64,000 nucleotides of DNA from Phallusia mammillata (GCA_965637545.1 OZ281498.1:4092001-4156000); one strand, 5' to 3'. Shown: positions 2,151-64,000, counted from the stretch's first letter. The notes: generated from the letters alone by a model not told the origin. A program made the numbers and translations.

Positions 2151-4199
2151 ATGGCCATTGATGTGCCGTTTGTACTTTTTCTTTCGGGAGTTTTACTATG
2201 CGGATGCTCGACAATGGCTGTATACTGTTTAGTGTCAAGCCTTAACGTCGATGAAGGACTGGGTATATGTTGCATGTAACCTTATGAATTACTTGTCATT
2301 TACTGTTTTTACTATTTGAGCAGGAACCTGGTCACTTGCGCTTGGTTACGTATCGTCACTTTTTGTTGCAAATTTGACACCTGTGATTGGATGCTATTTC
2401 GGGTGCAAGAAGTTGCTGCTCATTAGCGAGATTTGCTGGCTTCTGTTTGTACTGGGAAACATGTACACGTGTACGTATCAAGTTTTAACGGTAACAAAAA
2501 AATTGCCTTCTGCAATTTTTCTCCATCTGTTTATGGCCGTTTATTTTTGAGTTAAATGTTTCCAAACAAATTGTGTTTGCATTTAGCGTATTACACGGTG
2601 CTACCGGCCGGCTTTTTCCTCGGCTGCGGTGAAGCTTTTGGTTGGACAGCATTTCCCATCATCACCACCCACTTCGGAAAACAACGGGCGAAAAATAACC
2701 CGGCGATCACCCAAAAACATGTTCGATATTATACTGGATATTATTATGGAGTTATCCAGGGCAGCATAGTAAGAAATAATGAGACAAGTTGTGTCAGGAT
2801 AAAATTTGTGGAATCGCAAGCTTATTTTTTCGTGTTGTAGGTCGTAGGAAATGCTATTAATTTTGCGGTCCTGCATATCGATAGATCGTTAGCCGATGCA
2901 CATTTAACATATAATACCACAGAAAGAAACATTGACTACAGCGTTTGCGGTGCCAACGACTGTCAAATTGGAAACATAACGGGAGCAAACATGCAGCAAT
3001 ATTCTCCAGCGTTTCCTGCAACGAGATACGTCCTGATTATAATCTGTGCTTTATTAACTATCTGCTGTATTTTGTTGCACGGTTTATTTTTGCCCAATGA
3101 CATACACTGGAACCTAACCCAACCGAAATCAAATCCTAATGTAGAAAATAGCGATGGGAAGGAAATGGAATTGTCCAAAGAAAACCAAGCTGAAACGAAC
3201 AATCCATCGACTGAGGAAGAAACGGGTATGATCACAGAGTCAACCGCAAAAGAAAACGCACAACAGGAAACGGTACCAATCCTAAACATTTTTTATTTCG
3301 TTGTAAAAGCTGGACTTTCAATTGCAGGTTTCACTTAAAACCGTATTCATAACTACACTTAAAGCCACATTAAAAATTGCATTCAATCCAAAGCATTTGC
3401 TAGTGGTTTGGCTTGCAATATACAACGGAATGACAATGGGTTACGTCTTTGCGGAACTTACGAGAGCTTACACGTCATGCATTTTGGGTGTTGGCAAAGT
3501 AAGACATTGTTTTAAGATCACAAAACAAACTATTTTAACGCGTTGGTCATTCTTGAACAGGTGGGAGTTTGCATCATGCTGTTTTCAACTGCTGACTGCA
3601 CTTTCTCGCTAATTGCTGGGAAAATGGCCGGAAAATTTGGAAGGAACTTGCCATATTTTATTGCTTTCGTTATTGATATCGGTTTGTATGTGTTTAGCAT
3701 ACATTGGGAGTTTAACGCGGGGAACGAATGGCTTGTTTACATCATTTTTTTGATGTTCGGTTGCTCGGATGGAATATGGCAAACCCTTGTCACAGGTGAA
3801 CATGCAACCATTTTTATTTTACTCTTGAATTGCAGAAGATGTTAGCATGTGTTAACATTGTGCATTAAGATTGACTTTTTATTTTCAGCCATGTACGGGG
3901 AATATTTCATCGAGGAACAGCAATCGGCGTTCAACCTGTGGAATGTGATAGTAAACGTTGGCTTCCTAATACAATACGCAATGAGCACAGCTTTTTGCGT
4001 TTACACAAAATTATACATTCAGATTACTGTTTTGTGTGTGGCGATTAGCACTTACGGTAAGTTAAAATTTTAGGTGTTTGTTTGAAGCTTATTGACAAAT
4101 GTGCTTTTTCCAGCTATTTCGCAGTTCATATACTATCCTCAGGAAATTTGTGGAGGCAACGGAGAAAAGACCGACAATCACAAAATTCAAAAGCTATAA
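2151..4199 (+). CDS. UNC93A: UNC93-like MFS protein G1 (~510 aa, 8 exons)
   Basis: Exons 2151-2262, 2324-2470, 2587-2768, 2841-3272, 3328-3498, 3561-3795, 3889-4056, 4114-4199; all GT-AG and phase-consistent. Family motifs GCKKLL, CGANDCQ, AELTRAYTSCILG, YGEYF, STAFCVYTKLYI match UNC93A (GCK, CGASDC, EYTRSYVTCTLG, STFLCVHVKLYI). The exon-4 donor is the least certain boundary. Confidence 0.88.
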
Positions 4200-4543
4200 G
4201 CTGTGGGTTTTTGTTACAGGGATCATCACGTATACACGCGACTAGCATGAAAAAGAATATGCATGTCCGCAATAAAAGTTCAAAGGTAAACTTAATAAAT
4301 TTTACCATGCAAAGAAAGGTGTTACTTTGTAAAGCAATACAGTGTAAGCAACAGTGTATTTTTACGCTCCGTTAGCTGGCGGTATATTTGCCAATCATGT
4401 ATTTGTACATTAAATACTGCGTCAGGTTACTGTGTTTGCCATGGAGTTGTAATGAAAAACTAAAATTGAAGCCTGAACCCAAATCGTTTTTGATAAGCCC
4501 GTTTAGGTTCGAAAATACCCAAGACCAAACAAACACAATAGAC

Positions 4544-4835
4544 CAGTGGTTCTCAACCTTTGGTGGACCGTGGCCATCTGAAAGAAAGTTTTGGACCCCG
4601 TGGCCCCCTTCAAGTAACCCTGTAGGACCTGTGGCCCCCTTAAAAATGTAAATCGCAATCTCATGTTGGATTTCGGTGCTAATTTCGACTTTAAACAGGT
4701 CGAATAGAATAAACAAGAATCCATAATCGTAAAAACCTTAATACAGACAAATAGTATGTGAAATAGTCGATTAAATTTGGGAATAAAGTTAAAAAGGAAA
4801 TGGATTTTAGTGGGTGTTTCTCGTGGCCCCCCGGA
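4544..4835. mobile_element. hAT MITE, probably truncated
   Basis: Left TIR CAGTGGTTCTCAACC with gtggcccc subterminal repeats; a possible right end (ggttggaaaccactg) at 5291-5305 has no matching TSD. Confidence 0.5.
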
Positions 4836-5195: not shown

Positions 5196-8100
5196 TGTAA
5201 ACAAAAATATAGACAATGTTCGCAACAGGATTCTTCTGCCGCATTTTAACACAACAACATTAGCTCGGACAAGGGCGTATTTGTCAACAAGGTTGGAAAC
5301 CACTGCTTTAAGCAATGGCTAAATTAGTGGTTCTCAACTAGTGGTCCATGATGACACAGGACGTCAATTATATTTTGTGTTAAATTGAAAATAGGCTAGT
5401 TGCCAAGAATTTGTTGAATATTCAGTACAAAAAAGATTATCCAAGTTATCGGCCATTTGTTGTTATCGGCTATCTCATCGGTTAAAAAAAACAGTTCAAG
5501 TAGAACTGACCACATCTGAATGGGCCAGACAGTTTAAACGAGAGCAGTGAAACAGCAGATCAATGAAACAGCAGAAACACTTTTCTGCATTAGCAGCTCT
5601 CACACAGATTTGCTTGGTGTCCTATTCATGCAGAAATGAAACAAAATAGTGAGTTTGATTAGCCTATACCACCACTGAAATAAACGCAACTAGCAGGGTC
5701 AGTTGACACGCACATATAAATTCTACAAACATGAAGTAGTACACGGTGATTCATGGTGGTCATACCTTTTTGATACTGCTTGTTACGAATAAAACTTATA
5801 CAGCACTATTAAACTTTTAATGCACTGCAAAACTGACAAAAACGGCTTGCACGCAATAACTGTATAGGCTGTCTCGTTTAAAACATGTGCGAAACGACAT
5901 AGCCCCAACTAATAGAAATCGATATTAACACGCTTTACTGAATCTTGACCACAACACATGTATAAATAAGATAAATTAAATGAAAGAAACCTACCAGGGT
6001 CGCAAGGTTTTGCTTTTCGGAATATAAATAAGTTTTGACAGGACACACTGTGCATTAGAACGCTGATTATTTCTTGAAATACATGGAATGACGAAATCAT
6101 GTCCAGTCTTGTATTTTTGCCTGACGGAAGGGAAAACAAACCTCCACAACATAAACCTTTAAGTGAATACCATATACATACCTACCAACGCTCTTTTTTA
6201 AAGATAACTTTAAAAGTTCAATGTAGCTTGGCACACAATTGCTGAATAAGTTCTAAGGATGAAATTAAAGTTGATTGAAGTAGTTATCAATTATTTGAAA
6301 GTATAAAAAGTAAACTAAAAAGGGGGTGATAAAAGATCGTTGCTCCTCCAGCAGCAGCGATTTGTAGGGTAGCTTACGGTTGGTCGTGTTCGCATAATTT
6401 CTATAATCTTGTTTTTTGTGCACTGTGAGATGCTGTTTTATTCCATTAGGTAAATACAAAATCTAACCTAAGCTGTTTTGTTAAATAAAAACATTTATGA
6501 TAAAAGGGCGTTAATTACAACATTAACGAATGGTGAAAACTTTGCTCAAAACGTTTGCTTACTATGAAACCACGATAAAAAGAGTAACTAGGAGCGCTGG
6601 AATATATGGTTCCATTTTTTGACTGAGAGTGTTTAAAAATTTGACAGTCAATTTTTCTCTGTGGCATTATAGGTTAGGCACGCCTCGACAGGAAACTAAC
6701 CGACAAGCAGTGCGAAAAAATTATAGCTCTGTCTGGAACACAAACCAAGAACTTTTCTGCTTCACGATTTGCAACTAGTTCCTGTCAAGACTAAATCGAA
6801 TGGCTGTTATAGCTAAGGGAACAGGCTTATCCAGTGCATGTATAGCACCCTACCGTTAGATTTTGAGATAAGTTAGTTTTTCAAGGTTTTGATATTTATC
6901 CGATGGTCGTTGTTTGCTGCTTTAGTTAGTTTTAAATGGTTATACAGATTTAAAGAAGTGGCATACTGAAATGAGGTTGAATAAAGACGATCTATTTAGA
7001 CAGCAAATATATGTTGTATGTTATATTAAGCAAAATGCAAAAAGAAAAAGGTTTACAAAATCCGGTCCTGGTGATAGAGTATTGTTAGCATAGTCTTCAA
7101 TTCATGCTAACTAGTCTTCAATTCATGCTGATAAGTTGTTTCGCAAGAATGTAGGTATAACATCGTGCATCAAAACCCGCACAGACAACAGCTAAAACGA
7201 AAACCTTTAAGTAACCCGGAGAAACAGATTTTACCCCAAAGTGGCGGACATAACCGGGAAATTTCGTATTACCGCTTACCCTATGTTAGTATATCAGGCA
7301 AAAATGTCTGCTGATTTGTACAACTACAGTACTAATAAAATTGCATTATGTTAACGCCGGGAAAGCTTTAGCCGTTTGTTTGTCATTTTGTTGCTGATGA
7401 GATGGAACATCATGCAAGGTGGTTTTGACCACACGGAATTCTATGTTGCGAAAACTATTGTATGTCTATGCTAATTGGCATGTCAGTTCGCGTCACACGG
7501 TGAGTTGCCGGGTATTGGAAAACCTTAAGCAGGAAAAACAGTTGTGCAAGCCGAGCGTGGTTATGTAATCACATGACATGTAGTATACATTTTTGAAACG
7601 ATGCTCAATATCTTGTGAGGTGCTTCGGTAACATGAAGAGGGACATATTCGATGTAGAATATAGATTATTTGGTATAGTTGCTGCTAGTCTTGGGTAAAG
7701 AATAGAAAACTAATCAAGGGTTCGAATTTCGCAGCATAAGTTGCAGATCCTTGTATTACGATCAGTCGAAACGTCTGTCGCTTTTGAACCAACAGTTCCG
7801 GAAAGCAATTGTTGTTACAGCAGTAATCCTGACAGCAACAGCTTATCTGTCAAAGTAGGATACAGTTCAATCTGTGAATGATTATAAACTTCGTTTTGCA
7901 GCAGCACGATCATGTTAGTCTGATTTTCTTTTGTTGCCCAACAAACTTGGTGGCAAGGATTGCAACTGAAAACAGTTTTGTCAGCACACATGGCATAAAA
8001 CTATTGACTGAAATCACAACTCAACGCAAAGGCCGGTTTCAGCGAAAAATAATTGTTTCAACGTTTCAATGGAAAACAAAGATGATATTGATAATCTTCA

Positions 8101-8377
8101 AAACATACGTCGAACCTGTCAGTCAATGCTTCGATATGCATATGTTTTGATGCAACAATTTTACGGCGATATATACGCTATACGCGAGTTATCAACAAAA
8201 GCACGGTGTTGTTATAAGCAATTACAAAGACCATTTCATACATCTTTGGGGATGCTCAAATATTTATTACCTATTTGTAAGACTAGCTAAACTGTAATGG
8301 CATTCCTATCAAATTTATCTCTTGGAACGCAATTATCCGTTATCCAAAATGACAGAAGATGTTATTGCAGCACAACC

Positions 8378-8750
8378 TGGTTGGACTGTCTATAGCAGTG
8401 GTTCTCAAACTTTTTCATATTTTTTTCAAAACGGTCCCTTTGCCATTATTTCGAGGACTCGCGGTCCTTTAGCTGGAATGTGTATTTTAGAAAAACGAAA
8501 GTTTATTGTATGATTTTAGCTGCTTGTTTAGCAATGGAGACAGTCGATTCTCAATTCCAATGTGAATTAAACTTATTCAGTGGCATAAACTAACGCTAAA
8601 TAAGATTATAGAATTACTTCAACCGCTTCGCGGTCCTCCCAAAATTGCCTCACGGACCCCTAAAGGACCGCGGACCCCAGTTTGAGAACCGCTTCATGGT
8701 GTATAGCATTTTTTATAGCGGCCATTGATAAGTGGTAAAACATGCAGCAG
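8378..8750 (+). pseudogene. Relic of a G2-type exon 7, split by a MITE
   Basis: gttggactgt (VGLC) start and gcggccattgataagtg|gtaaaa end (cf. tggcagccactgatcattg|gtaa); mirror of the 20040-20130 relic. Confidence 0.5.
8396..8693. mobile_element. hAT MITE
   Basis: TIRs CAGTGGTTCTCAAACT / AGTTTGAGAACCGCT, ggtcc/ggacc subterminal repeats. Confidence 0.75.
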
Positions 8751-8801
8751 ACCCGATGCATGTTTTCATTGTGAGATAACAGATTCCTGATGGGTCTTTA
8801 C

Positions 8802-8950
8802 TAGTGATGTACCGAATCGGCTAAATTTCGATTCGGCCGAAACCGAATATTCGGCGGTTTTGCCGAATAAATTCGGCCGAATCAACCGAATCATTTATGA
8901 CGTCACGCGAAGAAATAAATTCAGCAAACCGAATATTCGGTACATCTCTA
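8802..8950. mobile_element. 149-bp hAT MITE (TAG-type TIR) rich in CCGAAT repeats
   Basis: TIR TAG(T/A)GATGTACCGAAT; exact 8-bp TSD GTCTTTAC at 8794-8801 and 8951-8958. Confidence 0.85.
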
Positions 8951-8959
8951 GTCTTTACC

Positions 8960-10320
8960 AGGTTGGACTGTGTATACTATATAGCAATCTGTCAAGCTTT
9001 GCTCATTCATTACAAAATTAGCTACTTGAAAGATCATTACGAAGCTAAACACAAAAACGTTCCCATCAATTACGCATCTAAGTCGGAGTTACGTAGGAAT
9101 AAGCTTAATCAGTTAAAATCTTCCCTAAATGGCCAGCAGAAAGTATTGACAACTTTCTGCAAGGAAACTGACACAATTACTGAAGCCAGTTTAATTGTAT
9201 CATAGAATAAAATACAATTAAACTGACTTCAGTAATTGTGCCAGTTTCCTTGCAGAATATTGCCTCTCCAAACATCCATATTCAGATGGTGAATTCGTTA
9301 AGAAGAATATATCTGAGGGGATTGCAGTGTAAGATCCTAAAAACACAAAACTTCACCGGCTAATATCGCCTCCAGTTTCAAGACACACAGTTATAAGACG
9401 AGTATTTGATGTCAAAGACCAATTGCAAAATGATATAAAAAATTGCACTGCATTCAGTTTAGCTTTAGACGAGTCAACAGTTGTGCAAGACAACCCGCAA
9501 TTGGCTGTATTTGTTCATTAGTTTTCTAAAAGCGTTGCTGTAAAAGAAGATGTGTTGAACCTAATCACATTAAAAGAAACAACTCACGCTGTAGATATTA
9601 AAAATGACTCCATCTTAATAAGTTCTGAAGTTCCGCTGAATAGACTTGTCAGTGTTGCAACAGACGGAGCACCTGTAATGGTCAGAAGAAATGTAGGTTT
9701 AATTGGACTGTTGAAGGATGATAACTTTCCTGTTTTTCTTCCTGTTCACTGTAGAATTCAACGTATTTTAACTATGACGTTATGACAACTGTTCTTAAAA
9801 TTGCAATTTGCGTACGCAAAAATGCCGAGATTCGCCGACAATTCAGAAACTTCATTGAAGATTTGAATCTTGAAGATAAACCTGTCTCATTTTACTGCAA
9901 TGTAAGGTGGTTGTTCACGAGCAACGGTTTGATTTGTCGGAGTCAATTAGTATTTTACTTAACCTAAGAAACAAACCTCATCTTCAGCTGGAAGATAGTA
10001 AGTGGTTACAAGACCTTATGTTTCTTACTGACGTAATGTACCATTTGCAAAGTTTAATCTTGGCACTCCAAGGGAAAGATCAGCTTGTTTCAGGCCTTTC
10101 TTAAAAAAAATTGGTTTTCAAAATCAACTCTTTTTACAAAGGGATTTTATTTGCAAAACATTGATCACTTCCCAGGGCAAGTTTCAAATAAGCCTTTTCT
10201 ACGATGCTGTAGGAGGCAGTGTATAGTAGATAAAAGTATTGATTTCACGTTATTTGCAGCTAATAGTCACAGGACATTAAACGCACTACGATGCCAAATT
10301 TGAGCTATTTAATTGACTTA
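8960..10320 (+). mobile_element. Degenerate hAT (Charlie/SPIN/GTF2IRD2-like) transposase
   Basis: Frame-broken motifs LKDHYEAKH (BED-finger like), KHPYSDGEFVK, FSLALDES, SVATDGAPVM..HC, YCNVRW, WLQDLMFLTDV..LQGK; many stops and frameshifts. Confidence 0.85.
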
Positions 10321-10379
10321 TCTTACATCCGCAGGGAGTCTTGTTAATTCATGCAAAGATTTTGCTAATTGAAGATAAA

Positions 10380-13300
10380 ATGTTGGATAATAAGCAGAAA
10401 GTTTTGAAAAAACTTGCTTTTTGTTCCCTTGGATACTTTCTCACATATGGATCCTACTACGCTATACTTTTTCTACAGTCGAGTATTAACATCGAAAAAG
10501 GACTAGGTGAATGGCAAATATTTTTACCTTCCGAAATGTTTTATTATCCATGTTTGGAAACTCTAGAGCGCATTATCCGTTTCAAGACCAACTATTTATG
10601 TTTTTGTCTTGAACGATATCACAGCATTTGAAGTATGAGGCGTGTTGTTAAAAAATACATATATTTTGTTGTATGATGGTGAGAACTTCAATTTTACACT
10701 TAGTCAAACTCTTTTCTTGTATTTTAATCAGGTGCTACATCAGCCACAGTTACATACTGTTGTTCAGTGGGTTTTGGTCTTCTACTGACACCGGCCATCA
10801 TCAGGATGTTCGGTGCAAAGTACGCCGCCATCATTTGCCAGGCGATGTACATCACCTACGTGTTGGCCAACTACTATCCGAGTATGTGCATTAACTGGAT
10901 TTTTGCTTTAGTGTATTAAGCATCGAATACCGTGAAAATAATAGTAGTATAGCCTACATACGTTGCACAGACCCCAAAAATATGATCTCTTAATTATTAT
11001 TGAACTATTTCTGAGCCCGTATTATTTAGTCGTTCCAGTTCTTGTTCCTGCTTCGGTCTTGGTTGGAATTGGAGAGGCGACAATGTGGCCAACCATGATT
11101 TTATTCAGTGTCCACTACGCACGATGTTACGCAAAACACGTCGGGAAAGCAAAGTCAACATACGAAACCGAGTTTGTGGGATATTTCTTTTTCGGATTTC
11201 AGCTTAGCCAGGTTAGGTTTGAAATAATGTTCTTCATTAAACGATTTGTTGCCCTCTGAAATATTGACTTTACGAATAAGACACGGTGCTTGTTGATTAG
11301 ACTTTTCAAGCAAATAATTTTGAGTCTTAACTGTTTTTTGTTTTTTTGCGGCAAGACTCTATCCGATTTGCGGCGAGGTTGTGTCTGGTATATCGGGGAA
11401 AGTTTCAAAGAACATGTCTAAAAACTTTAATTGTGTCCATAACGTTGTGATTCTAAGAAGGAGTGACTTAATTTGCATTATTATTGCTGATCCTTTTTTC
11501 CACTTTGCAAAACTTAACAGATATAGCTATTTTATCCAAGACTGGATGCAGCATTAAAGGGTTAAGTTAATGATTTAGCTGCAGGTACCAACCGCAAAAC
11601 TTTTTTTAAACAGAGACCCCAGGGTTAGGTAATAAGTCCTTTTAGTCGAGTCTCAAGTCATGTCAAATCAGTAAGGGTTCGTGTCCCAAGTCAAGTCAAG
11701 TCAAATGAGGTTCGAGTCTCAAGTCGAGTCAAGTCATTAGCGGTTTGAGTGAAGAAAGTCCCAAAAAGTTTTGCAACCAAAGTAAAAGGTTTGGATCAGT
11801 AGTTCTCAACGGGGGCGTTTGCTTTCACTAAGGGGGCGCTGGAAAATAATTGGGCGATTGGGGGGCACTGGGAAAAGATAGAGCACGTAAAACGAAACAA
11901 AACGTCAAAGTCATTTTTGTCATATCTCTTCCATCAGCGACCAGTAAAAGTAGATGATATTCACTGTATTGTGTACTTTGTTTGCTGCGGGGTTTTAAAG
12001 GTGATGTCACAATGCATTTTACACAAACCACCGAGCGTTAACGTGACGTCAGATGCTTGATGCTCGACCAAACAAAATGATTGCAGTTTTGGCCCATCAC
12101 GTGAACCAAGCTAAAAGCGATGAACACTGTTTGCATCATGTTGAGTTAACCATTTGAAACTTTATGATTAAGTTCTAAAACATAGCTTGTTAAACATTCG
12201 GCTCTTAATTATCGCACTGATACTGTTTGTGAAAAAAAATCGATTTGATTTTGTCAGTTTTGAAGGGGGCGTTTATAAATTACGAACACGTCAAAGGCCA
12301 AAAAAAGGTGAGAAACACTGGTTTAGATTTAGATAATTAATCTATTTAACTAGACTTTCTTATCTTAAAATGGACACCGCTTCATTACAGTGAACAGATC
12401 CCAACAACGTCCTTTTCTTAGAGTAGGTTCAACTTTAATGAAACACGTTAATTGACACTCCATAAACAGCGTGAAAAAAACGTCAATCTGTTCAAAGGAG
12501 TTTTTGGAAACCTAAAATTCATATTTTACTGCATGAACTACAGCGTTTGTTAAGTAATATTAGCGCTTAAAAGCGAATACTTGGTCTTGCTATGTACTGC
12601 ATACGATTGCATTAAACCAAGCAATAAGTACAACCCTTAATGCCAGTGTAAGAAAGTTTGTGCATGTAGCAGCGACTTCGTTACGTTAAAATTAAGCAAA
12701 ATGAACTTCCCATCGTGCACTAAATTGTTGCTGTTGTTTGGTTGAAGCCAACTGAACAGGTTATCCATTATAAGAAATTTCCGTTTTGTTGGTGAAATAA
12801 CGAGTCCGAGTCAAGTCTCTACTAAAACAAGTCCAAAGCAAATCGAGTCCTTTCACAACTGAGACTCGAGTCAAGTCAAGTCTTTTAAAAAGGCGACTCG
12901 AGTCGGACTCGAGTCGAATCACTGACTCGAGTCTCCTTATCGCTGAGAGATCCAAATGCTAAAAGCGGAAGTCAATTAAGTTAATTAAACTGTTAACAGA
13001 TATTTGCCAACCTGCTGAGCTACGCTATTCTCTACGGTGGAAAATCAAAACAAAATTCGACATTGGCAAGAAAACAGACCGAGGCAGATTTTTCATCTTG
13101 TGGCATCCACGATTGTCAAAATCCCAATGTTACTCACCAAAACATTGGCATGTACATTCCAACTTCAAAACTCACTCTCAATCTTGTGATCGGAGTGATG
13201 GCAGGAATGATCTTTGTCGCTGCCATTATATATTTTGCTCTAGTGAATGATATCAATCCTGCTCTTGAACAAAATGACAATATCGGACTTAATGAAACAG

Positions 13301-14525
13301 GTAAAGGTTAAGAGTTTATTTATACTGGCAATACATTACGAAAATTTAGCTTAACGTATAGGTCAATGCAAACTCTCTGGCGTTTTAAAATGATTTTGAG
13401 ACACGCGCTTTTTGAGCACAACAACTTGAAACAATTTATAACTTTTTTATTTTGATTGCAGAGCCTTTTGATGGAGATATAGGAAATGAAAACGAAGATG
13501 TAAACACTCTAAAGGTTGGATTGTGCAAGGTTTGAAAAGTTAACTAAAGAACTGAACAAGAACATTTCAATACATGTTATAGACCAAATTTGTCTTGATT
13601 TACAACACATGGAAGGCAACTTTTCGTCAAGTTCTCCGCCCAAAACAATTCCTTCTTGCCCCCTTCGCTTTTTATAGCGGTATGATAATGACGTTCGGTT
13701 ATTCAGAACTAACCAGAGCTTTTGCATCATGCCTACTTGGCGTCGATCAGGTAGTTGCACAAAAACCCAATAAATGTTTTAATCATAAAAAAACAGATTC
13801 CCGATTTGGTGTTTTTTTAGGTTGGGCTGTGTATGGCAATTTTTGCTGTATCTGGCGGATTTTCATCTGTTCTTATTTCTAAACTGCACAATCGGCTAGG
13901 TAGGAATATTCCCGTTGCAATTGGAGTTTGCATCGACGTTTCAAGCTACATGTTTCTTCTCTTGTGGAAACCTTCCAGAGAAAATCTTGGTGTTGTTTAT
14001 GTAACTTTCATCATCGTGGGAGTCGTGACTGGAATATGGCAGCCACTGATCATTGGTAAAGCCATTTTTTTAATAGCAGCAGAATATGGTTTGAGAATAT
14101 TCTTATGCTAGTACACATTCTTAGAAATTATGGGAGAGATTTTTCCACACAACCAAGAGGTTGTCTTTTCAGTTTGGAACATGTGGGTTCTCGCCGGATA
14201 TGCGGTTCAATTCGGTTGGAGTACAAGCCTGTGTGTCAATGTAAAGATTTATGCACAGCTGGGGATTTTATTGTTTTCAGTTTTGGCTTACGGTAAGGTT
14301 CTAATTTAGGCTACTGCCATGTGTCATTAAAGGTCCCATCATCTTGAAACATGCGTTTTGGTAGATTCAAAACAAAACAAATCAAATTTTAACTCCGCTT
14401 GATGTGAATTTTTCTTTACAGTTATCGCAAATCGTCTTCAAAATCGAGATGAAGAAATTTCAACCCCATTATTAAACGAGTCTGATGACGCAACAGTTAT
14501 ATCATACGGCACTGAAGGTCCTTGA
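10380..14525 (+). CDS. UNC93A: UNC93-like MFS protein G2 (~495 aa, 9 exons)
   Basis: Exons 10380-10506, 10732-10881, 11030-11211, 13000-13300, 13462-13514, 13583-13750, 13821-14055, 14125-14292, 14422-14525; GT-AG, phases consistent. Motifs LQSSINIEKGLG, CGIHDCQ, SELTRAFASCLLG, WSTSLCVNVKIY. Confidence 0.88.
11620..12945. mobile_element. GAGTC/CAAGTC-repeat-rich non-autonomous element in G2 intron 3, interrupted by a MITE
   Basis: Arrays of cgagtc/caagtc at 11644-11760 and 12800-12935; absent from the G3 intron. Confidence 0.5.
11797..12320. mobile_element. hAT MITE nested in G2 intron 3
   Basis: TIRs CAGTAGTTCTCAAC / GGTGAGAAACACTG; TSD GTTTGGAT/GTTTAGAT (7/8). Confidence 0.8.
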
Positions 14526-15377
14526 GCAGTCCAGTGTCATGCCAAAGTGCGCTAAAAACGTGTTGCCGGAAAGCGACAGATACGATGGTCACACTCACAT
14601 GGGTCCCAAAGTTCACATAAATTTTTGCGGTGCTACTCGGTCCGATCGTTTTGTTCCATGTTGCTCACTCTGAAAATGTTTGCATTTTGTGAAAATGTTT
14701 GTGTTGTGGCAGGTGCGACATCGGCCTCAGTGACTTATGTCTCTTCAATTGTTTTCCACATATTGCTAGCACCCGTCCTTATCGGGGAATGGATCATTTG
14801 AGTTCAGAAACAAACATCATATGCTTTCAACATTCGCCGACAAAAATCAAACACACAAAATTAATCTAAAGCAAACAGGATCAGGTTGCTGCAATTGTTA
14901 TCCGCGCATCTGTTTTCTTACACAAACAGAAGCTGTCTTTCTGGTTGCGTTTTGTTAGAACGCACAAATACTTGCGCCAAAAGCGTTCCCGCGGTCATTG
15001 CAAAGGTCACTGGAAAATAGTTACCTGGTTCGTGGTTGTAGATTGTAGACAAACAAATTATTACAAGAATGTTGCGAAATGTAGTAATTTCGATTATTAG
15101 CATGGAGTAAATTACCAAAGATGTTCTTCCAAAAAAAGCAATGCAGCATGGCTTTTACAAACTTCGTGTCAAACATCGCCGAATAGGCTTGACATGTTAA
15201 TTCGGAGAAAAAAATATTGTGAACTGTGCTTCCTTGGATGTTTCATACTGCTTCCATCCCGTTTACATCAAATTTTATTAACTGAATAATAATTTTCACA
15301 AAAAATATATACACAGACTATACAAGAGTTTGGGTAGACCTTTCAATCGTACAACAAGACAGCTGAAATATGATGAT

Positions 15378-18300: not shown

Positions 18301-19006
18301 GTCGCCTCTCCAACTCCAACCAGGACCGAAGCAGGAACAAGAGCTGGAACGACTAAACCGACAATACGGGCTCAGGAAAATATCGTTTAATACAAATATG
18401 GAGTTAATATTTTCTCGGGGTGTGTGCAATGTACTTACACTACTCTAATTTTTTAGGGCATTCGATGCTTAATGCACAAAAGTAAAACTCTAGTTAATGT
18501 ACATACTCGGATAGTAGTTGGCCAACACGTAGAAGATGTACATCGCTTGGCAAATGATGGCGGCGTACTTTGCACCGACGATCCTGATGATGGCCGGTGT
18601 CAGTAGAAGACCAAAACCCACTGAACAACAATATGTAACTGCGGCTGATGTAGCACCTGATTAAAATGAGAGAAAAAAGTTGTACTTCATTTAAAAAAAA
18701 TTATTACAACCAATCAACAAAATATATGTAAGTTATACTTACACAACATGCCTGATACTACGTATGCAAAAATATCATTTAACACAAATAAAACATAAAG
18801 TTGGTCTTATAACGGAATATGCGCTCTTAAGGTTTCAAGCATAAACATTGCGAAAAGTAAAAAAATATTTGCAATTCACCTAGTCCTTCTTCGATGTTAA
18901 TACTCGACTGTAGAAAAAGTATAGCGTAGTAGGATCCATATGTGAGAAAGTATCCAAGGGAATAAAAAGCAAGTTTTTTCAAAACTTTCTGCTTATTATC
19001 CAACAT
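15378..19006 (-). CDS. UNC93A: UNC93-like MFS protein G3 (~493 aa, 9 exons), inverted duplicate of G2
   Basis: Exons 19006-18880, 18656-18507, 18352-18171, 17208-16872, 16565-16507, 16201-16034, 15962-15728, 15665-15498, 15433-15378; lengths of exons 1-3 and 6-8 identical to G2. Exon 5 was inferred from phase only. Confidence 0.85.
17518..17589 (-). tRNA. tRNA-like gene or pseudogene, copy A
   Basis: GCCTGTG/CGCAGGC acceptor stem, D arm GCTC..GAGC, TTCGAAT T loop, T5 run just downstream; anticodon stem mismatched. Confidence 0.5.
17769..17843 (+). tRNA. tRNA-like gene or pseudogene, copy B
   Basis: Perfect acceptor stem GCCTGCG/CGCAGGC, perfect T arm GTGGG-TTCGAAT-CCCAC, T7 run at 17847-17853; D and anticodon stems degenerate. 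Confidence 0.5.
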
Positions 19007-53069: not shown

Positions 53070-56000
53070 TTTTTGTTTTAGGGGTGACATGTCAAAAGGT
53101 TAAATTGTACTGCCAACAAACCCGCGGTTCATCGAAGCTCAAATTGGAACTTCCACACACCTTTTGTGGTTTGAGATGTCTGGTGAACCGGTAAGATGCT
53201 TATTCGAGTTCATGTTCGTCAAGGTTGAAAGCATTGCAGCCACGCCGTCTTTACGCGGCCTAGTGACATGCGCTCAGTTGGGCATTTCAGGTAACAATGC
53301 CTAAAAATTGGAGATCAGGACACAGTATGGATTTGAATTGATGGTTTTGACGAAAGGATATTTAAATGAATTATTGTACCTATAAGCTGTGACAATCAGG
53401 AATTCGCAAAGGGGTTTGAATAGTGGTCAAGTACGGTATGTAATCATTTGATTTACAAAAGATATATGTTTTCATAAGTTATAACTTTATAACAGCGCCT
53501 ATATTGAGAACAGATACGAAAAGTATGCTCTCCACATAGGCTTATATATGTTGCACCATGCTGTGTAGTGTATAAGTAAAAATTTTATTCTAAACGGTCA
53601 TTTAACAACACCGACATTGCGTTTGCAGCTGTCTATTTTAATAAACTGTATGTTATTAACCTTATTACTTTTTTGTTTACATAGAAGTGAAGATGTCAAG
53701 TAAAAAATACTTTGTGGTGTTTTTGATTGGCGTTTTCTTTTGCTTTGCGGCCAACTATACAATGGTAGATTTGTCATCAAGTTTCAATGTCAAAAATGGT
53801 CTGGGTAAGTGTTTTTATACGCAAAAATATTTATACTGTCATTTTTTGTATACATGTCAAAAACGTAAGCTCACAGGTTACTGTTTGCATGTTTCTCCGC
53901 GCTATTTATACGTCAAGTGATACCGTCTTCGCTAGCAGAAACCACTGCATGTATTTCTCAGGAACCACATCGCTTGCCATATGCTATGCGGTGTCCATCG
54001 TTGCTGCTTTGCCAACCCCAGCTTTTGGACACAAAGTTGGCTGCAAACGCCTTCTAATAGTTGGCGAAGTGGGATATTTAATCTACATCCTTGCAAACCT
54101 ATATTCAGGTAACATATATGGAACCTTTTTACAAGTTACGTGTTTTGTCCATTCTTTTTTATCAGTTTGTGATTAACTTTGTCTGTAGGATACATAACTC
54201 TTGTTCCGGCTGGTTTCTTTTTTGGCATTGGCGAAGCTTGGGTTTGGACAGCCTTGCCTATTGTCGTCGCATACTTTGCAGAACAGCAACAAGACAAAAA
54301 CGAAAGTTCTGGAAGTCAACTGCGAAGATTGACAGGCTATTACCATGCGGTCATCGAACTAAGCACGGTTAAAAATATTTTCAAACATATTGTTATGCCT
54401 TTAAGCCAATTTTTACAAAAGGTTTTAAGAGTGCAATATATTTTGCACCTTTCAGAGAAATTTTGGTATATGTCCTTATGGCGAACCTTCAGTAGTTTGA
54501 AAATTTATGGGTGCTTATAAATTTTTTTGACATAACTTACTTATTTTTTGTAGTTTTGCTTTAATTTTAGTAGTTTTAAAGTTACCTTTGTAGTTAACAG
54601 GAAGCGCCATCAGTTTCGTGCTGCTGTACATTGACCGATCGCTTTCGAATCAATCTATTTCAAACTTTACCCCAGTAGCTCTCAACCTGGCGGTTTGCGG
54701 GGCCAACGACTGTCAAATACCCAACGTCACGAAAGCAAATGAGCAGCAATATCAACCGACATACCCGATAACAAAATATCTGTTGATTGCCATAATTGCT
54801 GGAATGAGCATTATCGCAATACTACTCTTCTACTTTTACATTCCCGATGAAGTTGCATGGGATTTAGAGAATAACATCGTTGAAGATACCACTAAAGTAA
54901 ATGTATATTCAATTGGGTTAAAAAAATCGTGGAAACCTGCAAAATCTGATCGACAATCACTAATAATAACCAACGGAAACTTATCAGCGGTAAAACAAGA
55001 AGTCGAATATGATGGCTGCAAGGTTAGTTGACTTATTTACATGCACTTTAAACTTCTGCATTGCCAGGATTAATCAATTTGTCTTGTACTATTTATTGAG
55101 TTTGGGCAAATATACGTCACTATTTTCATTCAAAGATTTCTACATATTCATTGATGGTACAATCAGTAAAGGACATGTTTAAACTTTCTATAAGCGGAAA
55201 ACACCTTCTCATTGTTCTGCTGGCTATTTACAGTGGGACATTGAACGGTTTTCATTCCGGTGAACTGACTCGAGCATTTGTTTCCTGCATTCTTGGTGTT
55301 GATCACGTGAGTACTACAACAAATAAAGGGAATTTAGTGACGAAATCTAACTGTTTTGGGCTTCAAAATTTTAATATGCTTAGCGTTAGAACAGAAGTGA
55401 ACATTCTGCGGCCACAGATACAGATTTATACTGCTGTGGACATGTGTATTAAAACATCTGTTTTTAAAAAATAAAAAGTATCCTAAATACTTTTTTATTA
55501 GATAATTTGCTTATAAAACTAGGCTACTATATCAACTGAATAATCCATCAAATTTAGTTTGCGTTTTAATGAAATATTTTACGGCAGCTATATTTATGCG
55601 TTCAGTATGAGTTTGTAAAGAGTGCACATATTTTTCTTTTGTTTCTGCTTGTATTATAGTTTGTTTTAAAATTTGGATTGTGACGTTTCGAGCTGGCCTA
55701 CAATTTGTGGAATGTCGTCGTCAGTATGGGTTATACATGGCAGTTCGCTGTTAGCACCTTCTTTTGCGTGTACGTTAAAATCTACATCCAACTCGGATTG
55801 CTGGGTGCTGCAATGATTACTTACTGTGGGTATTTGTGATGTAGAATAAGGTTTCCGTTTTCCCCAAAATTTCATTTTTGTGCAATAATATGAATTTTTT
55901 AGTCATTTCCCAAGTGATCTACTATCCCGAACAAGGCTGGTTGATTCAAAGCAACAAGAAAAAAAATAATTGTCATAAATTATTAACGTCGGATGAACAA

Positions 56001-56560
56001 TTACTCTTGGATGATCTGACCTTTAATTAATTTCAACACACTTTTCTTGTTACCCTTACCATCATTACCATTTGCAATTCGAACGTCTTCCACTCCTCAA
56101 CTTAATTTAAATGCAATGTATCAACCTAAAGAACGGCCTGTTTTTTGTTTTTGCAAAAGCAACCTAACATATAAGTTATTTTATTTATGTGAAATGAAAT
56201 AAATCACCTCGTTTCTACATTTTTATAATAAAGTCTAATCAATTTGTTGTACAAATAGTCCACATTATTGTCATGATACAAACTGTCTTGTTGCATTCGA
56301 TTTAGAACAAAACGTTATTTTGGGTTTAAGTCGTTTAAATATGTAAAAAACTTGATGACTAGCAAGAAGATTAAATTGTGCTACCAACAAACCCAAGGAA
56401 TGTCCTTCGCAGTTTTACCCCCAAACTTGAAGTTTCAAACACCTTTGTTCGTGGTTTGGATGTCTGGTGATCGTCAAGGTTGAAAGCGTCGCAGCCACGT
56501 CGTATTTACAAAGCGTTGTGTGACATGCGCTCATAAAAAGCTCAATTCAGCAGTTCAGGC
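53070..56560. repeat. Upstream block duplicated with G6/G7 (53070-53300 ~ 56370-56560)
   Basis: ccaacaaaccc..gatgtctggtga..tcgtcaaggttgaaagc..gcagccacg..gtgacatgcgctca shared. Confidence 0.7.
53693..56030 (+). pseudogene. UNC93-like G6: recent duplicate of G7 lacking exon 6 and 35 nt of exon 7 (possibly still in frame, ~432 aa)
   Basis: Intact exons 53693-53804, 53962-54108, 54189-54367, 54594-55022, 55136-55306, then 55693-55825 (after a cryptic gag| acceptor) and 55903-56030; no exon-6 sequence between 55307 and 55692. Confidence 0.8.
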
Positions 56561-58954: not shown

Positions 58955-61835
58955 ATGTCAAGTAAAAAATACTTTGTGCTGTTTTTAATCGGGGTCTTCT
59001 TTTGCTTTGCCGCCAACTACACAATGGTAGACTTGTCATCAAGTTTCAATATCAAAAATGGTGTGGGTAAGTGTCTTTATACACAACAGAAAGATTTATT
59101 TTACAATTGTTTACATGCACGTTTTACATTTGCTCTAAACTTGTCTGCAAAACCATCAAAGCAAAGCGCACAAAATATGTACAGCTTGTTGTTTCCATGT
59201 GAAGATGTAGTTCACCACACTTTGAAGACGTTATTTATACGTCAAGTGATACCGTCTTCGCTAGCAGAAACCACTGCATGTGTTACACAGGAACTACATC
59301 GCTTGCCATATGCTATGCAGTGTCCATCGTTGCTGCTTTGCCTACCCCAGCTTTTGGACACAAAGTTGGCTGCAAAAGCCTTTTAATGATTGGCGAAGTG
59401 GGATATTTAATCTACATTCTTGCCAACCTATATTCAGGTAACCTTTTCACAAGTTACGTGTTTTGTCAATTGTTTTTGTCAGTTTGTTGTTGACATTGTC
59501 TGTAGGATACATAACTCTTGTTCCGGCTGGTTTCTTTGTGGGCATTGGCGAAGCTTGGGTTTGGACAGCCTTGCCTATTGTCGTCGCATACTTTGCAAAA
59601 CAGCAACATAATGAAAACGAAAGTTTTGGAAGTCAACTGCGAAGATTGACAGGCTATTACCATGCCGTAATCGAACTAAGCACGGTAAAAATAGGAAAAC
59701 AAGAGTATTAAACTGAATTTCAAAAAAGGTTTATTAAAGTAAAACAGTTTAATTTTGCACCTTTTGTAAAGACAAATGTAATTTTGCTATTATTCCTTAT
59801 AGCAAAAGTGATTTACTGTTTTTAACCTCCCTATTATTTTTTATAGTTTGATTTACTTTTAATAGTTTATTAAATATGTTTGTAGTTAACAGGAAGCGCC
59901 ATCAGTTTCGTTGTGTTGCACATTGACCGTTCGCATCCAAATGAATCCACATCAAACATTACTTCGGAACCTCGCGACTTAACTGTTTGCGGGGCCAACG
60001 ACTGTCAAATACCCAACATTACGAAAGCAAATGCGCAGCAATATCATCCGACATACCCGATAACAAAATACCTGTTTATTGCCATAATTGCTGGCATGAG
60101 CATTGTCGCAATACTACTTTTCTACTTTTACATTCCCGACGAAGTTGCTTGGGATTTAGAGAATTATAACATCGTTGAAGATACGACTAAAATAAGTATA
60201 TATTCAATTGGGTTGAAAAAATCGCGGAAACCTGCAAAACCTGATCAAAAATCACTTATAATAACCAACGGAAACTTATCAGCGGTAAAACATGAAGGCG
60301 AATGTGATGTAAAAAATACTGACTGCAAGGTTAGTTGACCTCACTTACATGCTTTTCTTCTTGTTTCTTATATTTTTTAAGTTCAGCCAAATATACGACA
60401 TTTATTTTATTGAAATGCTTTTAACTTTTTTACAGAGTTCTACATATTCATTTTTGGTACAATCAATGACGGACACGTTTAAACTTGCTATAAGCGGAAA
60501 ACACCTTCTTATTGTTCTGCTGGCAGTTTATAATGGAGCATTGAGTGGTCTTCGTTCCGGTGAACTCACTAGAGCATTTGCCTCCTGTATTCTCGGTGTT
60601 GATCACGTGAGTTTCCAGAAGCATGTTTTTACTTTCTGTTTAGACTTGTATTGTGGTCACAGTTTTTAAAATTGCGGTCAACTTGCAATCAACTTCCGCA
60701 AAATCTATACCTTTCGGATTCTGTAAAAATATAAAGGTTGTAGATCATTGCCGTAAGCGGGCCGTTCGAGTTCCATTGGATTTATGAGATGGTTATTGAT
60801 ACAAAATAGTTAACATACTATAAAGACAATCGTTACGTTCATTAACTCTGGTCTTTACTTTATATTTGAGACGACGTAGAGCAGGGGTCGGTAACTCCCA
60901 CCACGTCTGCCACAGGGGGGAACTCGAGATCTATTCAGGACAATCCCTACAAGAATAAAGTAACACATTACTTTGCTTTAAAATATACTGCGCATTGATA
61001 AGCTTGTTTGCAAGTTCCCACCAGCTAATTTGCTAGACTATGAAAGGGGAACAAAATTTCGACGTTATTTTAGATGGATCACAGTACCTTGAAAAAAATC
61101 TTTTAGTTTAAATTTCTTTATTTTTAGGTTGGAATCTGTATGATGGTTTTCTCTGCAACTACCTGCATTGCTTGTGTTGCATGCGGCAAGTTTTCCGCCA
61201 AATACGGAAGAAATATACCGTTTTTACTTGCTTCTGTGGTAGATGTCGCCACCTATATATTTTGTCTTAACTGGAACATCACCGCAGCCAATACTTGGCT
61301 TGTATACATACTTTTTGCTATGTTTGGAATTTCTCTTGCCGTTTGGAACACACTCGTAATTGGTAAGTTTATTAATGTGTGTAATGACATCCAGTTATGC
61401 AAAATGTCTTCGCACAGCATACATAGGCTTGTAACAACAGTTTCAGGAAAAAGATCGATTACCACAATTGCCTTTCTTAGCGCTCTATGGGGAATACTTT
61501 GAAGACGAAGACAAGCTGGCCTATAATTTGTGGAATGTCGTCGTCAGTGTCGGTCTTATGTGGCAGTTCGCTGTTAGCACCTTCTTTTGTGTGTACGTTA
61601 AAATCTACATCCAGCTCGGATTGCTTGCTGCTGCAATGATAACCTACTGTAAGTAGTTGTTTGGGTTTAGAACCACATTGAAGTACAGGTTTCTCTGTAT
61701 TTTATAGTCATTTCCCAAGTGATCTACTATCCAGAGCAATGTCCGTTGATTCAAAGCGACAAGAAAAATAATAGTCGTTATAGATTATTGACGTCGGATG
61801 AACAATTGCTCTTGGATGATCTGACGTTTGATTAA
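58955..61835 (+). CDS. UNC93A: UNC93-like MFS protein G7 (~527 aa, 8 exons)
   Basis: Exons 58955-59066, 59291-59437, 59506-59684, 59886-60329, 60436-60606, 61128-61362, 61481-61648, 61708-61835; GT-AG, phases consistent. Confidence 0.9.
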
Positions 61836-62209
61836 TTCATCACCCTTCTCTTGTTACCCTTACCATTATTATCATTTGCAGCATCAGTTTTGATACGATT
61901 ACTTGCATTTGCTGCCAAACGAGTTGATGTTTTCGGTTTCGTGCACCAAACATTTCAAAATTATTTTTTTTTGTATTTTAACCAGCAAACGTTTTTACCG
62001 TGCAAGTTAATAGGGTGGTAAAACAATATTCGTCGACATGCTGCATGGAAAGGCTCACAAACTTGCAAATTGCATTGAATTTCTGTCCATTGTGATTATT
62101 AGATAATGTGAAAGTGAAATTTATTAATATACTTACACCAGGGCGCAAGAGCAGTTCTTATTTTGGTAACGGTTTTGGAGCAATTAATAACAATAAAATT
62201 CTAGGCGAA

Positions 62210-64000
62210 TCATGAGAGGTTTGCTGTATTATTGCGTGCTGGACTTGGAAATGCAGCAATGTTACCTATTATCGCATTTAATTCAGGCCTTGATTTTAAA
62301 ATTAATGGTTTTTACGCAACCAAAGCAGCCAATGGTGTTGGTAAATGAATTAGTTAAGCTATAGCTGCCGCAACTCTTAAAATATTAGTGCGGACCTCAT
62401 TTAAAATTTCTCCATGTCGCTAGTTCACGCAGGAAAGTTTTTAAAATCGGGTGCTACATATAGCTATATGGTTGCTAAAGCAAAATACATCAATCGTAAA
62501 CTTGATGTTTTTTCCACGCGTAAAATTTTCCTATTTGTAGATTCTGGTTCCGTGCAGCATGCACCTAAACTCAGTAATAACGTTCTTGACAGCCTCAAAT
62601 TTAGTATCATTACTTAAGAAACAACATCGCTTACTATATGTTAATGCCGTACGCCTAAATCAATCAAGAACAATGAACCAATAATAAACTATTCATGCCA
62701 GAGGAAACCTCACTCGTAAATAGGTTAAAAACACTGCAACTTTTTAAATTCCACAACTGTTCGTCTGACATGGGGATTTGAACGTTTATTTAATCTTGTA
62801 ACAGGACGTAAACGGGGCGAACCCGCGAACCGAAAAAAAAAACATTCGACTACATCTTTTCACCAACAAAACACCAGGAAATGTCCTAAAAGAAGGAATG
62901 GTCGTCATGGTAATGTCTCTACACTGCACAAATTTCACATGCTAACATCTATGGTGATTTGGGTAATATAAGGATGTCTTAATATCAGCTTATCAACTAT
63001 TTGTTTAGATGTGATGCTACTTTTTATGCATGTCAAATAGTAATGGGTTGTGAGTCGAATTTTAATCATTCCTTTAACGATTTATTTATTATGCTTTCGA
63101 ATACTTTTTTTTCCTTCACGCACTTATATTACCTATTCGTTTACATTATACTTGACCACACAGTATTCACTTATTCGTTGTGCATAATTATTTATGCTTT
63201 TCCTGTGTTTCTACGTTCGCATCTAATGTATGATTTGTGGGTTCACGGTTATTGCTTCTGTCGATACACGGATGTGCCTCTTGTGGTCACATGATTTGTT
63301 AATGATCGGTTAACTTTCTATTCCACGTGCTGTGTCTGTCAATTAGTAGTCTATCATGTTTTACTAGCATAAAGATATTATGTTGTATTTAAGGGACAAC
63401 ATATGCTATATGCTATGCTATGCTATGCTATGCGTATCCATCGTGGCAGCTTTGTCGATACTAGTTCTTGGACACAAAGTTGGCTGCAAACGCGTTCTTA
63501 TCATTGGTGTAGTTGGTTTTTTAATGTACATTCTCAGTAACATATACTCAGATAATTCACACGTTTAATTGGTTGGGACATTTGGAGAAGTTTGTTGAAA
63601 AAAATGTTTTCAAGGGTTCTTAACTCTTGTCCCTGCCTGCTTCTTCATAGGTCTCGGCGAAGCGTTGGTGTGGACGTCTCTGGCTATCATTACCACATAC
63701 TTTGCAAATGACTCAATATTAAGCTTTTGGGGGACAACTATAGTTAGGTTCACAGGCTACTATCATGCCGTCATCGAACTCAGATATGTGCAAGGAAATT
63801 TCCCTAATACTTAATATTTCCAAGAACCTATAGCAATATTTTCTACCTTATAGTTCACAAGAAGCGCCTTTAACTTTAACGTTTTACTGTGAATGAGGAC
63901 CAATATCATCCGATGCACCCGTCAACAAAGCATCCGTTTATCGGTATAATTGCTGGCTTAACGGTTGTGGCAATACTAATTTTCTACATTTGCATTCCTG
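62210..64000 (+). pseudogene. UNC93-like G8 pseudogene (cut off by the window end)
   Basis: Degenerate exon 1 ending NGVG|gt (~62340); exon 2 (63394-63551) with (TGCTA)n expansion and GT>AT donor loss; exon 3 at 63615-63787; exon 4 from 63854 with TGA at 63890 and the CGANDCQ loop deleted. Confidence 0.85.

Follow-up and report, generated by a model that had tools for sequence, protein, structure and literature searches.

A stretch of 64,000 nucleotides of the ascidian Phallusia mammillata (assembly GCA_965637545.1, contig OZ281498.1, here called C5, positions 4092001-4156000), which we refer to as the window and number from its first nucleotide, carries part of a large array of genes related to UNC93A, a membrane protein of the major facilitator superfamily (MFS). 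The window has a G+C content of 36-42%, contains no N, and presents only short open reading frames (ORFs), as expected of intron-rich eukaryotic DNA. Recurring coding pieces were sought by all-against-all BLAST of stop-to-stop ORFs across the window, and eight exon families were recovered, always in the same order, at eight loci (G1 to G8). Alignments of these families, inspected together with the sequence at their edges, revealed AG and GT sites conserved at fixed offsets, and an automatic modeller with frame-aware choice of donors and acceptors and a bonus for canonical exon lengths reproduced exactly the G4, G5 and G7 genes that had been joined by script, besides returning complete frames for G1, G2 and G3. 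These six copies have uninterrupted frames of 442-527 amino acids and seven introns, all of the GT..AG type; their exons measure, from first to last, 112 or 127, 147 or 150, 179 or 182, a variable 243-444, 171 or 168, 235, 168 and again a variable number of nucleotides. An earlier interpretation drawn from the DNA alone (the sequence-only reading) had listed exon lengths of 147/150, 179/182, 171/168, 235 and 168 and had counted six intact and two broken genes. The spliced models give the same lengths, and the count also stands, with G1-G5 and G7 open and G6 and G8 damaged, provisionally in the case of G2 and G3, whose intact status turns on an unverified splice donor.

The first gene, G1 (2151..4199, + strand), is an intact copy of 510 amino acids that belongs to a G1-like subfamily, its exons lying at 2151-2262, 2324-2470, 2587-2768, 2841-3272, 3328-3498, 3561-3795, 3889-4056 and 4114-4199. 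Two members of a G2-like subfamily follow: G2 (10380..14525, +; 458 amino acids) has its eight exons at 10380-10506, 10732-10881, 11030-11211, 13000-13242, 13583-13750, 13821-14055, 14125-14292 and 14422-14525, and its inverted, convergently oriented paralogue G3 (15378..19006, -; 442 amino acids) has them at 19006-18880, 18656-18507, 18352-18171, 17208-16966, 16201-16034, 15962-15728, 15665-15498 and 15433-15378, the donor of exon 4 being uncertain in both. The remaining three open copies are intact eight-exon genes on the + strand that form part of a G4-like subfamily, namely G4 (32178..35947; 510 amino acids; exons 32178-32289, 32752-32898, 32951-33129, 34010-34411, 34559-34729, 35163-35397, 35598-35765 and 35829-35947), G5 (46426..50419; 517 amino acids; exons 46426-46537, 47236-47382, 47442-47620, 48057-48473, 48947-49117, 49405-49639, 50060-50227 and 50295-50419) and G7 (58955..61835; 527 amino acids; exons 58955-59066, 59291-59437, 59506-59684, 59886-60329, 60436-60606, 61128-61362, 61481-61648 and 61708-61835).

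Independent support for the exon modelling comes from a copy just outside the window. A profile of exon 6 built from six copies was searched against 1.8 billion proteins, and its best match was a P. mammillata protein of 511 amino acids deposited under the name "unc-93 homolog A-like" (CAB3267516.1, here P0001), which we take to be derived from cDNA. Locus U15, which lies 1.7 kb before the window at -3788..-1718, yields a modelled protein that agrees with P0001 at each of the 511 residues (100% identity), and P0001 therefore serves both as a check on the models and as the full-length stand-in for the array proteins in database searches and folding. G1 is 78% identical to it.

G2 and G3 occupy, tail to tail, the arms of an old inverted duplication that self-blastn delimits at 6551..25122; the arms of this palindrome are 74-92% identical about a centre near 14900, and the matching pairs run from 6551-6889/25122-24775 through 13596-14305/16188-15483. 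In both genes exon 5 has a single usable acceptor, of phase 0; those donors that look good where the exon 4 ORF ends are of phase 1; and the GTTAAT donor of the closest relatives (array copies U5, U7 and U8) is mutated. Their frame is open only via a phase-0 GTGAAT donor at 13243 in G2 and 16965 in G3, with a very short central loop as the result, and it is because of this dependence, together with the loss of the relatives' donor, that the two genes are called intact only provisionally. Other exon 4 donors were tried and rejected, being incompatible in phase with the only usable exon 5 acceptor and so producing a frameshift; G3 has one poor alternative acceptor. The N-terminal halves of G2 and G3 show a synonymous divergence (dS) of 0.09 and the C-terminal halves one of 0.80, whereas most other pairs diverge evenly, a pattern that suggests gene conversion or a mosaic origin within the palindrome.

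Two loci of the window are damaged to different degrees. Comparison with G7 places the broken copy G6 at 53693..56030 (+): its exons 1-5 are open (53693-55306), homology to G7 breaks off at 55312 and is picked up again within exon 7 at 55691, and the 378 nucleotides between (55313-55690) are unrelated sequence that takes the place of exon 6 and of 10-11 codons at the start of exon 7. What is left of exon 7 (55693-55825), directly preceded by an AG, and exon 8 (55903-56030) are open, so that splicing of exon 5 to this remnant and on to exon 8 would be in frame and would yield a protein lacking roughly helices 8-10. With a dS of 0.23 and a ratio of nonsynonymous to synonymous divergence (dN/dS) of 0.32 against G7, G6 is, as judged from these values, a young copy of that gene. 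The catalogue of exons identifies G8 (63368..64451, +, running past the window end at 64000) as a decayed pseudogene: its exon 2 is altered, its exon 3 has suffered deletions, its exon 4 has lost the 5' part and is reduced to the 3' third, its exon 5, which runs to 64451, is degenerate, and exons 1, 6, 7 and 8 are missing.

Intergenic DNA of the window was searched for relics in all six frames, with tblastn using 17 array models and with profile hidden Markov models (HMMs) of the single exons, and the two methods agree on three solid and two marginal relic exons outside the eight loci, all five on the + strand. The solid relics are an exon 2-like piece where the 3' ends of G2 and G3 face each other across a spacer (14715..14783; tblastn E 4e-4, exon HMM E 1.8e-5), a solitary exon 5-like piece, G4 in type, some 1 kb ahead of G5 (45342..45461; tblastn E 2e-6, exon HMM E 2.6e-7) and an exon 6-like piece with a stop and a frame change (28399..28565), 84% identical in DNA to exon 6 of G1; the marginal ones are an exon 4-like piece with a stop (24936..25022; E 0.026) and an exon 5-like piece (26340..26378; E 0.057). 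Since the relics at 24.9, 26.3 and 28.4 kb stand in gene order and are of G1 type, 24936..28565 (+) is probably a single decayed G1-type pseudogene. The dozen or so relics on both strands that had been proposed from the sequence were thus an overcount.

The window covers only the central part of the array. An exon catalogue compiled by tblastn over 214 kb (the window, C5:4092001-4156000 of a 240-Mb assembly, and its flanks) extends the array over 168 kb, from window -97753 to +70742, with 21 loci, 17 of which have complete frames; partial clusters (U4, U6 and U11) come in addition to these loci, and U2, in which no exon 1 was detectable, adjoins a 200-N gap at window -82893 (C5 about 4009107). 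The subfamilies lie mostly in blocks, with G2-like copies upstream, then the G1-like U13, U14, U15 and G1, then G2/G3, and then the G4-like G4-G8 and D1; one G1-like copy, U3, is found far upstream of the others. Amino acid identity is 64-72% within the G4 group and 84% between G2 and G3, it falls to 40-44% between G1 and the G4 group, and it stands at about 29-40% between G2/G3 and the rest, higher figures for the latter being local alignments of the C-terminal half only. The division into three diverged subfamilies (G1; G2/G3; G4-G8) first drawn from the sequence is accordingly confirmed, at 29-44% protein identity between them. In DNA, self-blastn gives 78% identity between G6 and G7 over 1.7 kb including introns, 77-92% between G2 and G3, and 68-83% for the rest.

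Across the genome the exon-6 profile has 39 matches, about 21 of them within C5:4000217-4162126. Another 18 exon-6-like matches lie off the C5 array, several in small clusters (C1 at 24.08-24.11 and 30.09 Mb; C2 at 5.90, 8.25 and 20.07-20.20 Mb; C4 at 9.37, 10.18 and 15.31 Mb; C6 at 10.32 Mb; C7 at 24.11 Mb; C8 at 2.34-2.35 Mb), for a total of some 40 loci genome-wide by this exon. A second UNC93 cluster (C6:8914289-8983467), with at least eight copies in tandem or inverted on both strands, matches the Pfam UNC-93 family and shares a CG(K)NDCQ loop with the C5 array, but unlike that array it has kept a canonical AAPLWSAKCTY motif. Because the genome search with the C5 exon-6 profile gave no match to this cluster at E<=0.001, we regard it as a distinct UNC93A-like group of more conventional character. 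The strongest Pfam UNC-93 exon matches in the genome (up to 60.6 bits) belong to a single multi-exon gene at C2:16551856-16567823; the array proteins do not match it at E 1e-3, and for this reason it probably represents a conserved gene, present in a single copy, of the wider UNC93/MFSD11 family.

Several lines of evidence place the array proteins in the UNC93A family. Behind P0001, the full-length matches of the exon-6 profile that rank next are tunicate proteins, and among the 30 matches that were checked by name, 26 come from Clavelina, Ciona and Styela and likewise carry the name "unc-93 homolog A-like". When a tunicate profile (P0001, Clavelina and Ciona proteins, and assembly-derived proteins of the two clades A and B described below) was aligned by hhalign with a profile of UNC93A (proteins so named from Hydra and frog, with relatives from sturgeon, leech and two metagenome records), the probability was 100% and the E-value 5.3e-64 over 434 columns, and on this comparison of sequences homology to UNC93A can be considered firm. 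P0001 scores 37.8 bits against Pfam MFS_1 (cut-off 33.4). Scores against Pfam UNC-93 (PF05978) are borderline: exon 2 by itself exceeds the 22.9-bit cut-off in G7 (25.5) and G6 (23.5) and falls just below it in G5 (22.4) and G4 (21.1). An AlphaFold2 model of P0001 built with 32 homologues (predicted local distance difference test score, pLDDT, 86; predicted template modelling score 0.85) shows helices in a pattern that fits 12 transmembrane segments and additional short helices in the loops, with a disordered tail and a disordered central loop at residues 241-289 (loop pLDDT below 50). Foldseek comparison of this model with the PDB returned UNC93B1 first (7c76_B and 7c77_B; E 4.7e-10; template modelling scores 0.64/0.68), about 400 times better than the next MFS proteins (SV2A, MFSD2A, VMAT2 and others) and at the head of 378 MFS matches at E<=0.001, and a phmmer search of PDB sequences also placed UNC93B1 first, weakly (E 0.014). 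The array proteins are therefore modelled as having the 12-helix MFS fold, in which two six-helix halves would be joined by a cytosolic loop. That the genes are of UNC93 type had been proposed from the sequence, and the profile alignment and the fold bear this out and narrow it specifically to UNC93A-like.

Motifs both link the array proteins to their relatives and set them apart. All 17 array models carry, in transmembrane helix (TM) 4, the motif G-x-G-E-A-x-x-W with a membrane-embedded glutamate. The tunicate radiation as a whole has in common a Cys-Gly-x-x-Asp-Cys-Gln core and an N-x-T sequon in the TM5-6 loop, an E-x-T-R motif, a G-R-N loop between helices 8 and 9 that resembles MFS motif A, and a lysine within C-V-x-x-K-I-Y; among the 32 homologues, R377 of the G-R-N loop is found in 30, E335 in 22 (31 when aspartate is counted), R338 in 26 and K468 in 30. 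UNC93A itself, a putative atypical MFS solute carrier represented by human UNC93A and Drosophila CG4928, is homologous over the whole length, shares the 12-helix MFS fold, and has the same cysteine pair in the TM5-6 loop (CG...C), an [ED]-x-T-R motif after TM7 and a G-R loop between TM8 and TM9. It differs in that the glutamate motif of the array stands in place of its TM4 signature, in that the G1-like and G4-like copies of the array have a longer, disordered central loop rich in acidic residues, serine and threonine, in that Pfam UNC-93 scores in the array mostly lie at or below the gathering threshold, and in that it is present in one or two copies as against tens here. UNC93B1, the trafficking chaperone of Toll-like receptors (PDB 7C76, 7C77), provides the best structural match and the best PDB sequence match, and yet it is only 11-13% identical to the array protein and has a long cytosolic N-terminus that the latter lacks: the first helix of P0001 starts at residue 5 of 511, and residues 124-180 of UNC93B1 align with residues 54-110 of P0001. 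In the tree described next, moreover, the array genes group with UNC93A-named proteins in the UNC93A radiation and not in the UNC93B1 branch.

A maximum likelihood (ML) tree of the 17 array models and 25 database proteins obtained from one profile search, rooted on non-tunicate UNC93A, contains two well-supported tunicate clades. Clade A (support 98/98) unites the nine modelled G2-like Phallusia copies with two Ciona genes and with two proteins encoded on short assembly contigs; how the Phallusia and Ciona members branch relative to each other inside it is not resolved by the ML tree. Clade B (100/99) comprises one Ciona gene, three proteins from short contigs, three Clavelina genes and the G1-like and G4-like Phallusia copies, which together form a Phallusia-only clade (99/97) with the Clavelina genes as sister group. 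A single origin of the whole array was tried and rejected, as forced monophyly costs 215 log-likelihood units (approximately unbiased test, p 1.8e-16). Two anciently separated genes are therefore represented in one cluster, each of them multiplied in the Phallusia lineage. The two Ciona orthologues in clade A are dispersed singletons among unrelated neighbours, and set against them the nine modelled Phallusia copies, like the Phallusia-only clade of G1-like and G4-like genes, uphold the lineage-specific expansion that the sequence-only reading had put forward.

Clusters of the same family exist in other tunicates on a smaller scale. Clavelina lepadiformis (CAUIVY010000067.1:3.70 Mb) and Styela clava (OZ123526.1:11.63 Mb) each have three genes for proteins of about 500 amino acids in head-to-tail tandem within the 25 kb examined, as compared with 21 loci in 168 kb in Phallusia. 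The Clavelina run (CAUIVY010000067.1:3700406-3725842) lies directly downstream of a gene for an organic anion transporting polypeptide (OATP, SLCO); beside the Phallusia array, where the exons of the upstream flank were read by eye only, no OATP was noticed. The distinct loci among the profile matches number at least 10 in Styela clava, at least six in Clavelina and at least four in Ciona, these counts being lower bounds from one profile search and name look-ups. Tunicates thus generally carry several to a dozen UNC93A-like genes, so that the premise of the sequence-only reading that UNC93 is usually a low-copy family fails for tunicates, and the Phallusia cluster appears to be the largest among the tunicate genomes looked at, in a comparison that was not an exhaustive census of the others.

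These observations fit a history of classical birth-and-death, as had been surmised from the window: dS between copies ranges from 0.12 to saturation, and broken copies (two in the window), relic exons and an old inverted duplication accompany the open genes. Two ancient tunicate lineages, clade A (G2-like) and clade B (G1-like and G4-like), would have come to lie side by side; each would have been multiplied in Phallusia through successive tandem duplications, with an inverted duplication on at least one occasion, and some copies, as exemplified by G6, G8 and the relic exons, would later have been lost.

Selection on the surviving copies was assessed by pairwise Nei-Gojobori estimates on codon alignments, for whole genes and by region. 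For whole genes dN/dS lies between 0.17 and 0.38, and dS extends from 0.12 (U5/U8) to saturation. The membrane halves are constrained (0.11-0.25 in most pairs), and so is the exposed TM5-6 loop (0.09-0.36 in 10 of the 11 computable pairs, G2/G3 being the exception at 0.51); by region, the ratio rises to 0.6-0.9 in most pairs in the central cytosolic loop and to 0.33-1.43 in the C-terminal tail. From these codon comparisons the copies appear to be under ordinary purifying selection, with divergence concentrated in disordered cytosolic parts and not in exposed surfaces. In the surviving copies, purifying selection would hold the membrane domains and the glycosylated, disulphide-type extracellular TM5-6 loop in place, and the cytosolic central loop and tail would drift almost freely.

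Taking the evidence together, we consider it likely that the array is a set of tunicate-specific MFS genes of the UNC93A branch with 12 helices, 21 loci in 168 kb expanded by birth-and-death, whose products are probably carriers or carrier-like modulators. The copies would most likely act as secondary solute or ion carriers or as carrier-like modulators of membrane potential and would differ mainly in cytosolic regulatory or sorting sequences, a role in keeping with the conserved membrane glutamate, with loops that resemble motif A and with a constraint that is uniform over all helices. In the fly, a study of UNC93A proposes a role in renal function, potassium balance and membrane potential and discusses a link to TASK channels (PMC7591606). 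A number of points weigh against this interpretation. Over the full length, P0001 scores only 20.7 bits against Pfam UNC-93 (E 2.6e-4; profile positions 5-373), short of the 22.9-bit cut-off; an exon-wise scan gave no Pfam UNC-93 match for the G1 and G2 exons; and the canonical TM4 motif of UNC93A, AAPLWSAKCTYLT (G-L-S/G-A-A-P-L-W-S-A-K-C-T-Y-L-T), is found in none of the 17 array models. For G2 and G3 the junction between exons 4 and 5 is unverified, and their status remains provisional on the sequence at hand; the upstream models U1 and U14, with their unusual exon lengths, may be imperfect, and U3 has no complete model; only U15, which lies outside the window, matches a deposited protein. 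As to function, we know of no UNC93 protein with a demonstrated substrate, and a carrier role is something we infer; the UNC93 relatives with well-established roles, C. elegans UNC-93 and UNC93B1, act as accessory subunits or chaperones.

The array proteins could instead be accessory or trafficking subunits, a series of adaptors with different cytosolic sorting tails, and of the alternatives this one survives best, as a tentative possibility well behind the carrier interpretation. Of the relatives that have been characterised, UNC93B1 accompanies Toll-like receptors on their way to endolysosomes and UNC-93 of C. elegans regulates the two-pore potassium channel SUP-9. An adaptor role for the array proteins would agree with UNC93B1 being the closest match both among solved structures and among PDB sequences, with the concentration of divergence in the cytosolic loop and C-terminal tail (dN/dS 0.33-1.43), where sorting signals would lie, and with acidic dileucine-type motifs in some of the tails, such as DEQLLL in G7 and EKNMLL in G5, which are weak evidence for endolysosomal sorting; the TASK channels and membrane potential effects discussed for fly UNC93A (PMC7591606) point in the same direction. 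Set against these are the missing UNC93B1-type cytosolic N-terminus, a tree position within the UNC93A radiation, the retention of carrier-type features (the TM4 glutamate, motif-A-like loops and strong constraint across all membrane helices) and an array that holds no client receptor or channel gene.

Most copies could be transcriptionally silent or recently dead, with one or a few, for example U15, functional and the open frames of the others a reflection of their youth as duplicates. Only U15 has a deposited counterpart, the G2/G3 junction is doubtful, and the damaged G6 still shows a dN/dS of 0.32 against G7, from which it follows that low pairwise dN/dS is no proof of current function. 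We nevertheless consider widespread silence unlikely, in that many old pairs (dS 0.5 to above 1) have kept complete frames, canonical splice sites at seven introns and a membrane-domain dN/dS of 0.1-0.25, whereas truly dead copies in the array, G8 and the relic at 24.9-28.6 kb, are visibly decayed.

Less probable still is a repertoire of immune or detoxification type, as the sequence-only reading had envisaged, shaped by diversifying selection on exposed luminal or extracellular surfaces. The large copy number, the pseudogenes and the lineage-specific clades are what such a repertoire would show, and the part of the TM5-6 loop before the CGANDCQ motif does differ in length between subfamilies. 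Within subfamilies, however, that loop evolves under constraint in all computable pairs but the deviant G2/G3, its Cys-Gly-x-x-Asp-Cys core and N-x-T site are nearly invariant across tunicates, and the fast-evolving parts are the disordered central loop (241-289) and the tail; since only the cytosolic loop and tail evolve freely, nothing here resembles immune-type diversification, and the proposal is not sustained. The candidate roles named in the sequence-only reading, endolysosomal receptor trafficking or vacuolar solute transport, are speculative.

A more specific extension of the carrier interpretation can be entertained only as a long shot, namely that the burst to about 20 copies was adaptive and produced vacuolar or endolysosomal carriers, with a new TM4 glutamate and copy-specific sorting tails, that serve a physiology specific to phlebobranchs, by which we would mean, for example, the extreme loading of blood-cell vacuoles with acid, sulphate or metal. 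Were this true, the array would offer, for the first time, a natural system in which an UNC93A-type protein could be matched to a substrate. Finally, that haplotypes or collapsed repeats were laid out in tandem by the assembly, a concern given that ascidian genomes are highly heterozygous and that the array contains one 200-N gap (window -82893), is effectively refuted by the divergence between copies, the closest in the window reaching no more than 77-92% identity in DNA and differing in intron lengths and flanks, the nearest pairs standing at dS 0.12-0.38, the three subfamilies sharing 29-44% protein identity, and the window being free of N.

Other features lie in and around the array. A single-exon ORF of 309 amino acids at 39109-40038 (-), inside the array, has seven hydrophobic segments by eye, and fragments related to it occur at 41800-42220 (-). 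Searches found neither a Pfam match nor a sequence homologue for it, and its language-model features resemble chordate clusters automatically named "Serpentine receptor class gamma" or hypothetical protein (score 0.95). One possibility is a seven-transmembrane receptor gene of the orphan kind, accompanied by a decayed duplicate 2 kb away. Ten intergenic ORFs gave no Pfam match. About 85 nucleotides upstream of the G5 start codon lies a tandem repeat (46173-46341; 42 nucleotides x 4 or 82 nucleotides x 2; 87-90% matches). Short dispersed intergenic repeats, 74-87% identical and without a Pfam match, occur at 20541-20757, 43900-44128 and 51184-51291 and also at 29049-29282/47712-47948 and 22939-23068/30805-30933; all of these are probably transposon debris. 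Beyond the array, inspection by eye recognised exons with SH3 and tyrosine-kinase motifs upstream and an ankyrin-repeat exon together with transposon-like ORFs downstream.

In animals where it has been studied, UNC93A is present in one or two copies, and to our knowledge it is an orphan carrier-like protein without a known substrate. Our literature searches found no account of an UNC93A expansion in tunicates. What the window and its surroundings document is a tandem expansion of the ordinary kind, in a family that is known but little understood; the expansion is larger than first reported and of moderate interest as a resource; by itself it alters no established view and settles no long-standing question. 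For the tunicates as a group, the comparison reveals a multi-copy UNC93A radiation. Phallusia embryos are transparent and easy to electroporate, and the dozens of constrained ascidian paralogues, differing mainly in their cytosolic loops and tails, constitute a natural series for work on the structure, function and localisation of UNC93A-type proteins.

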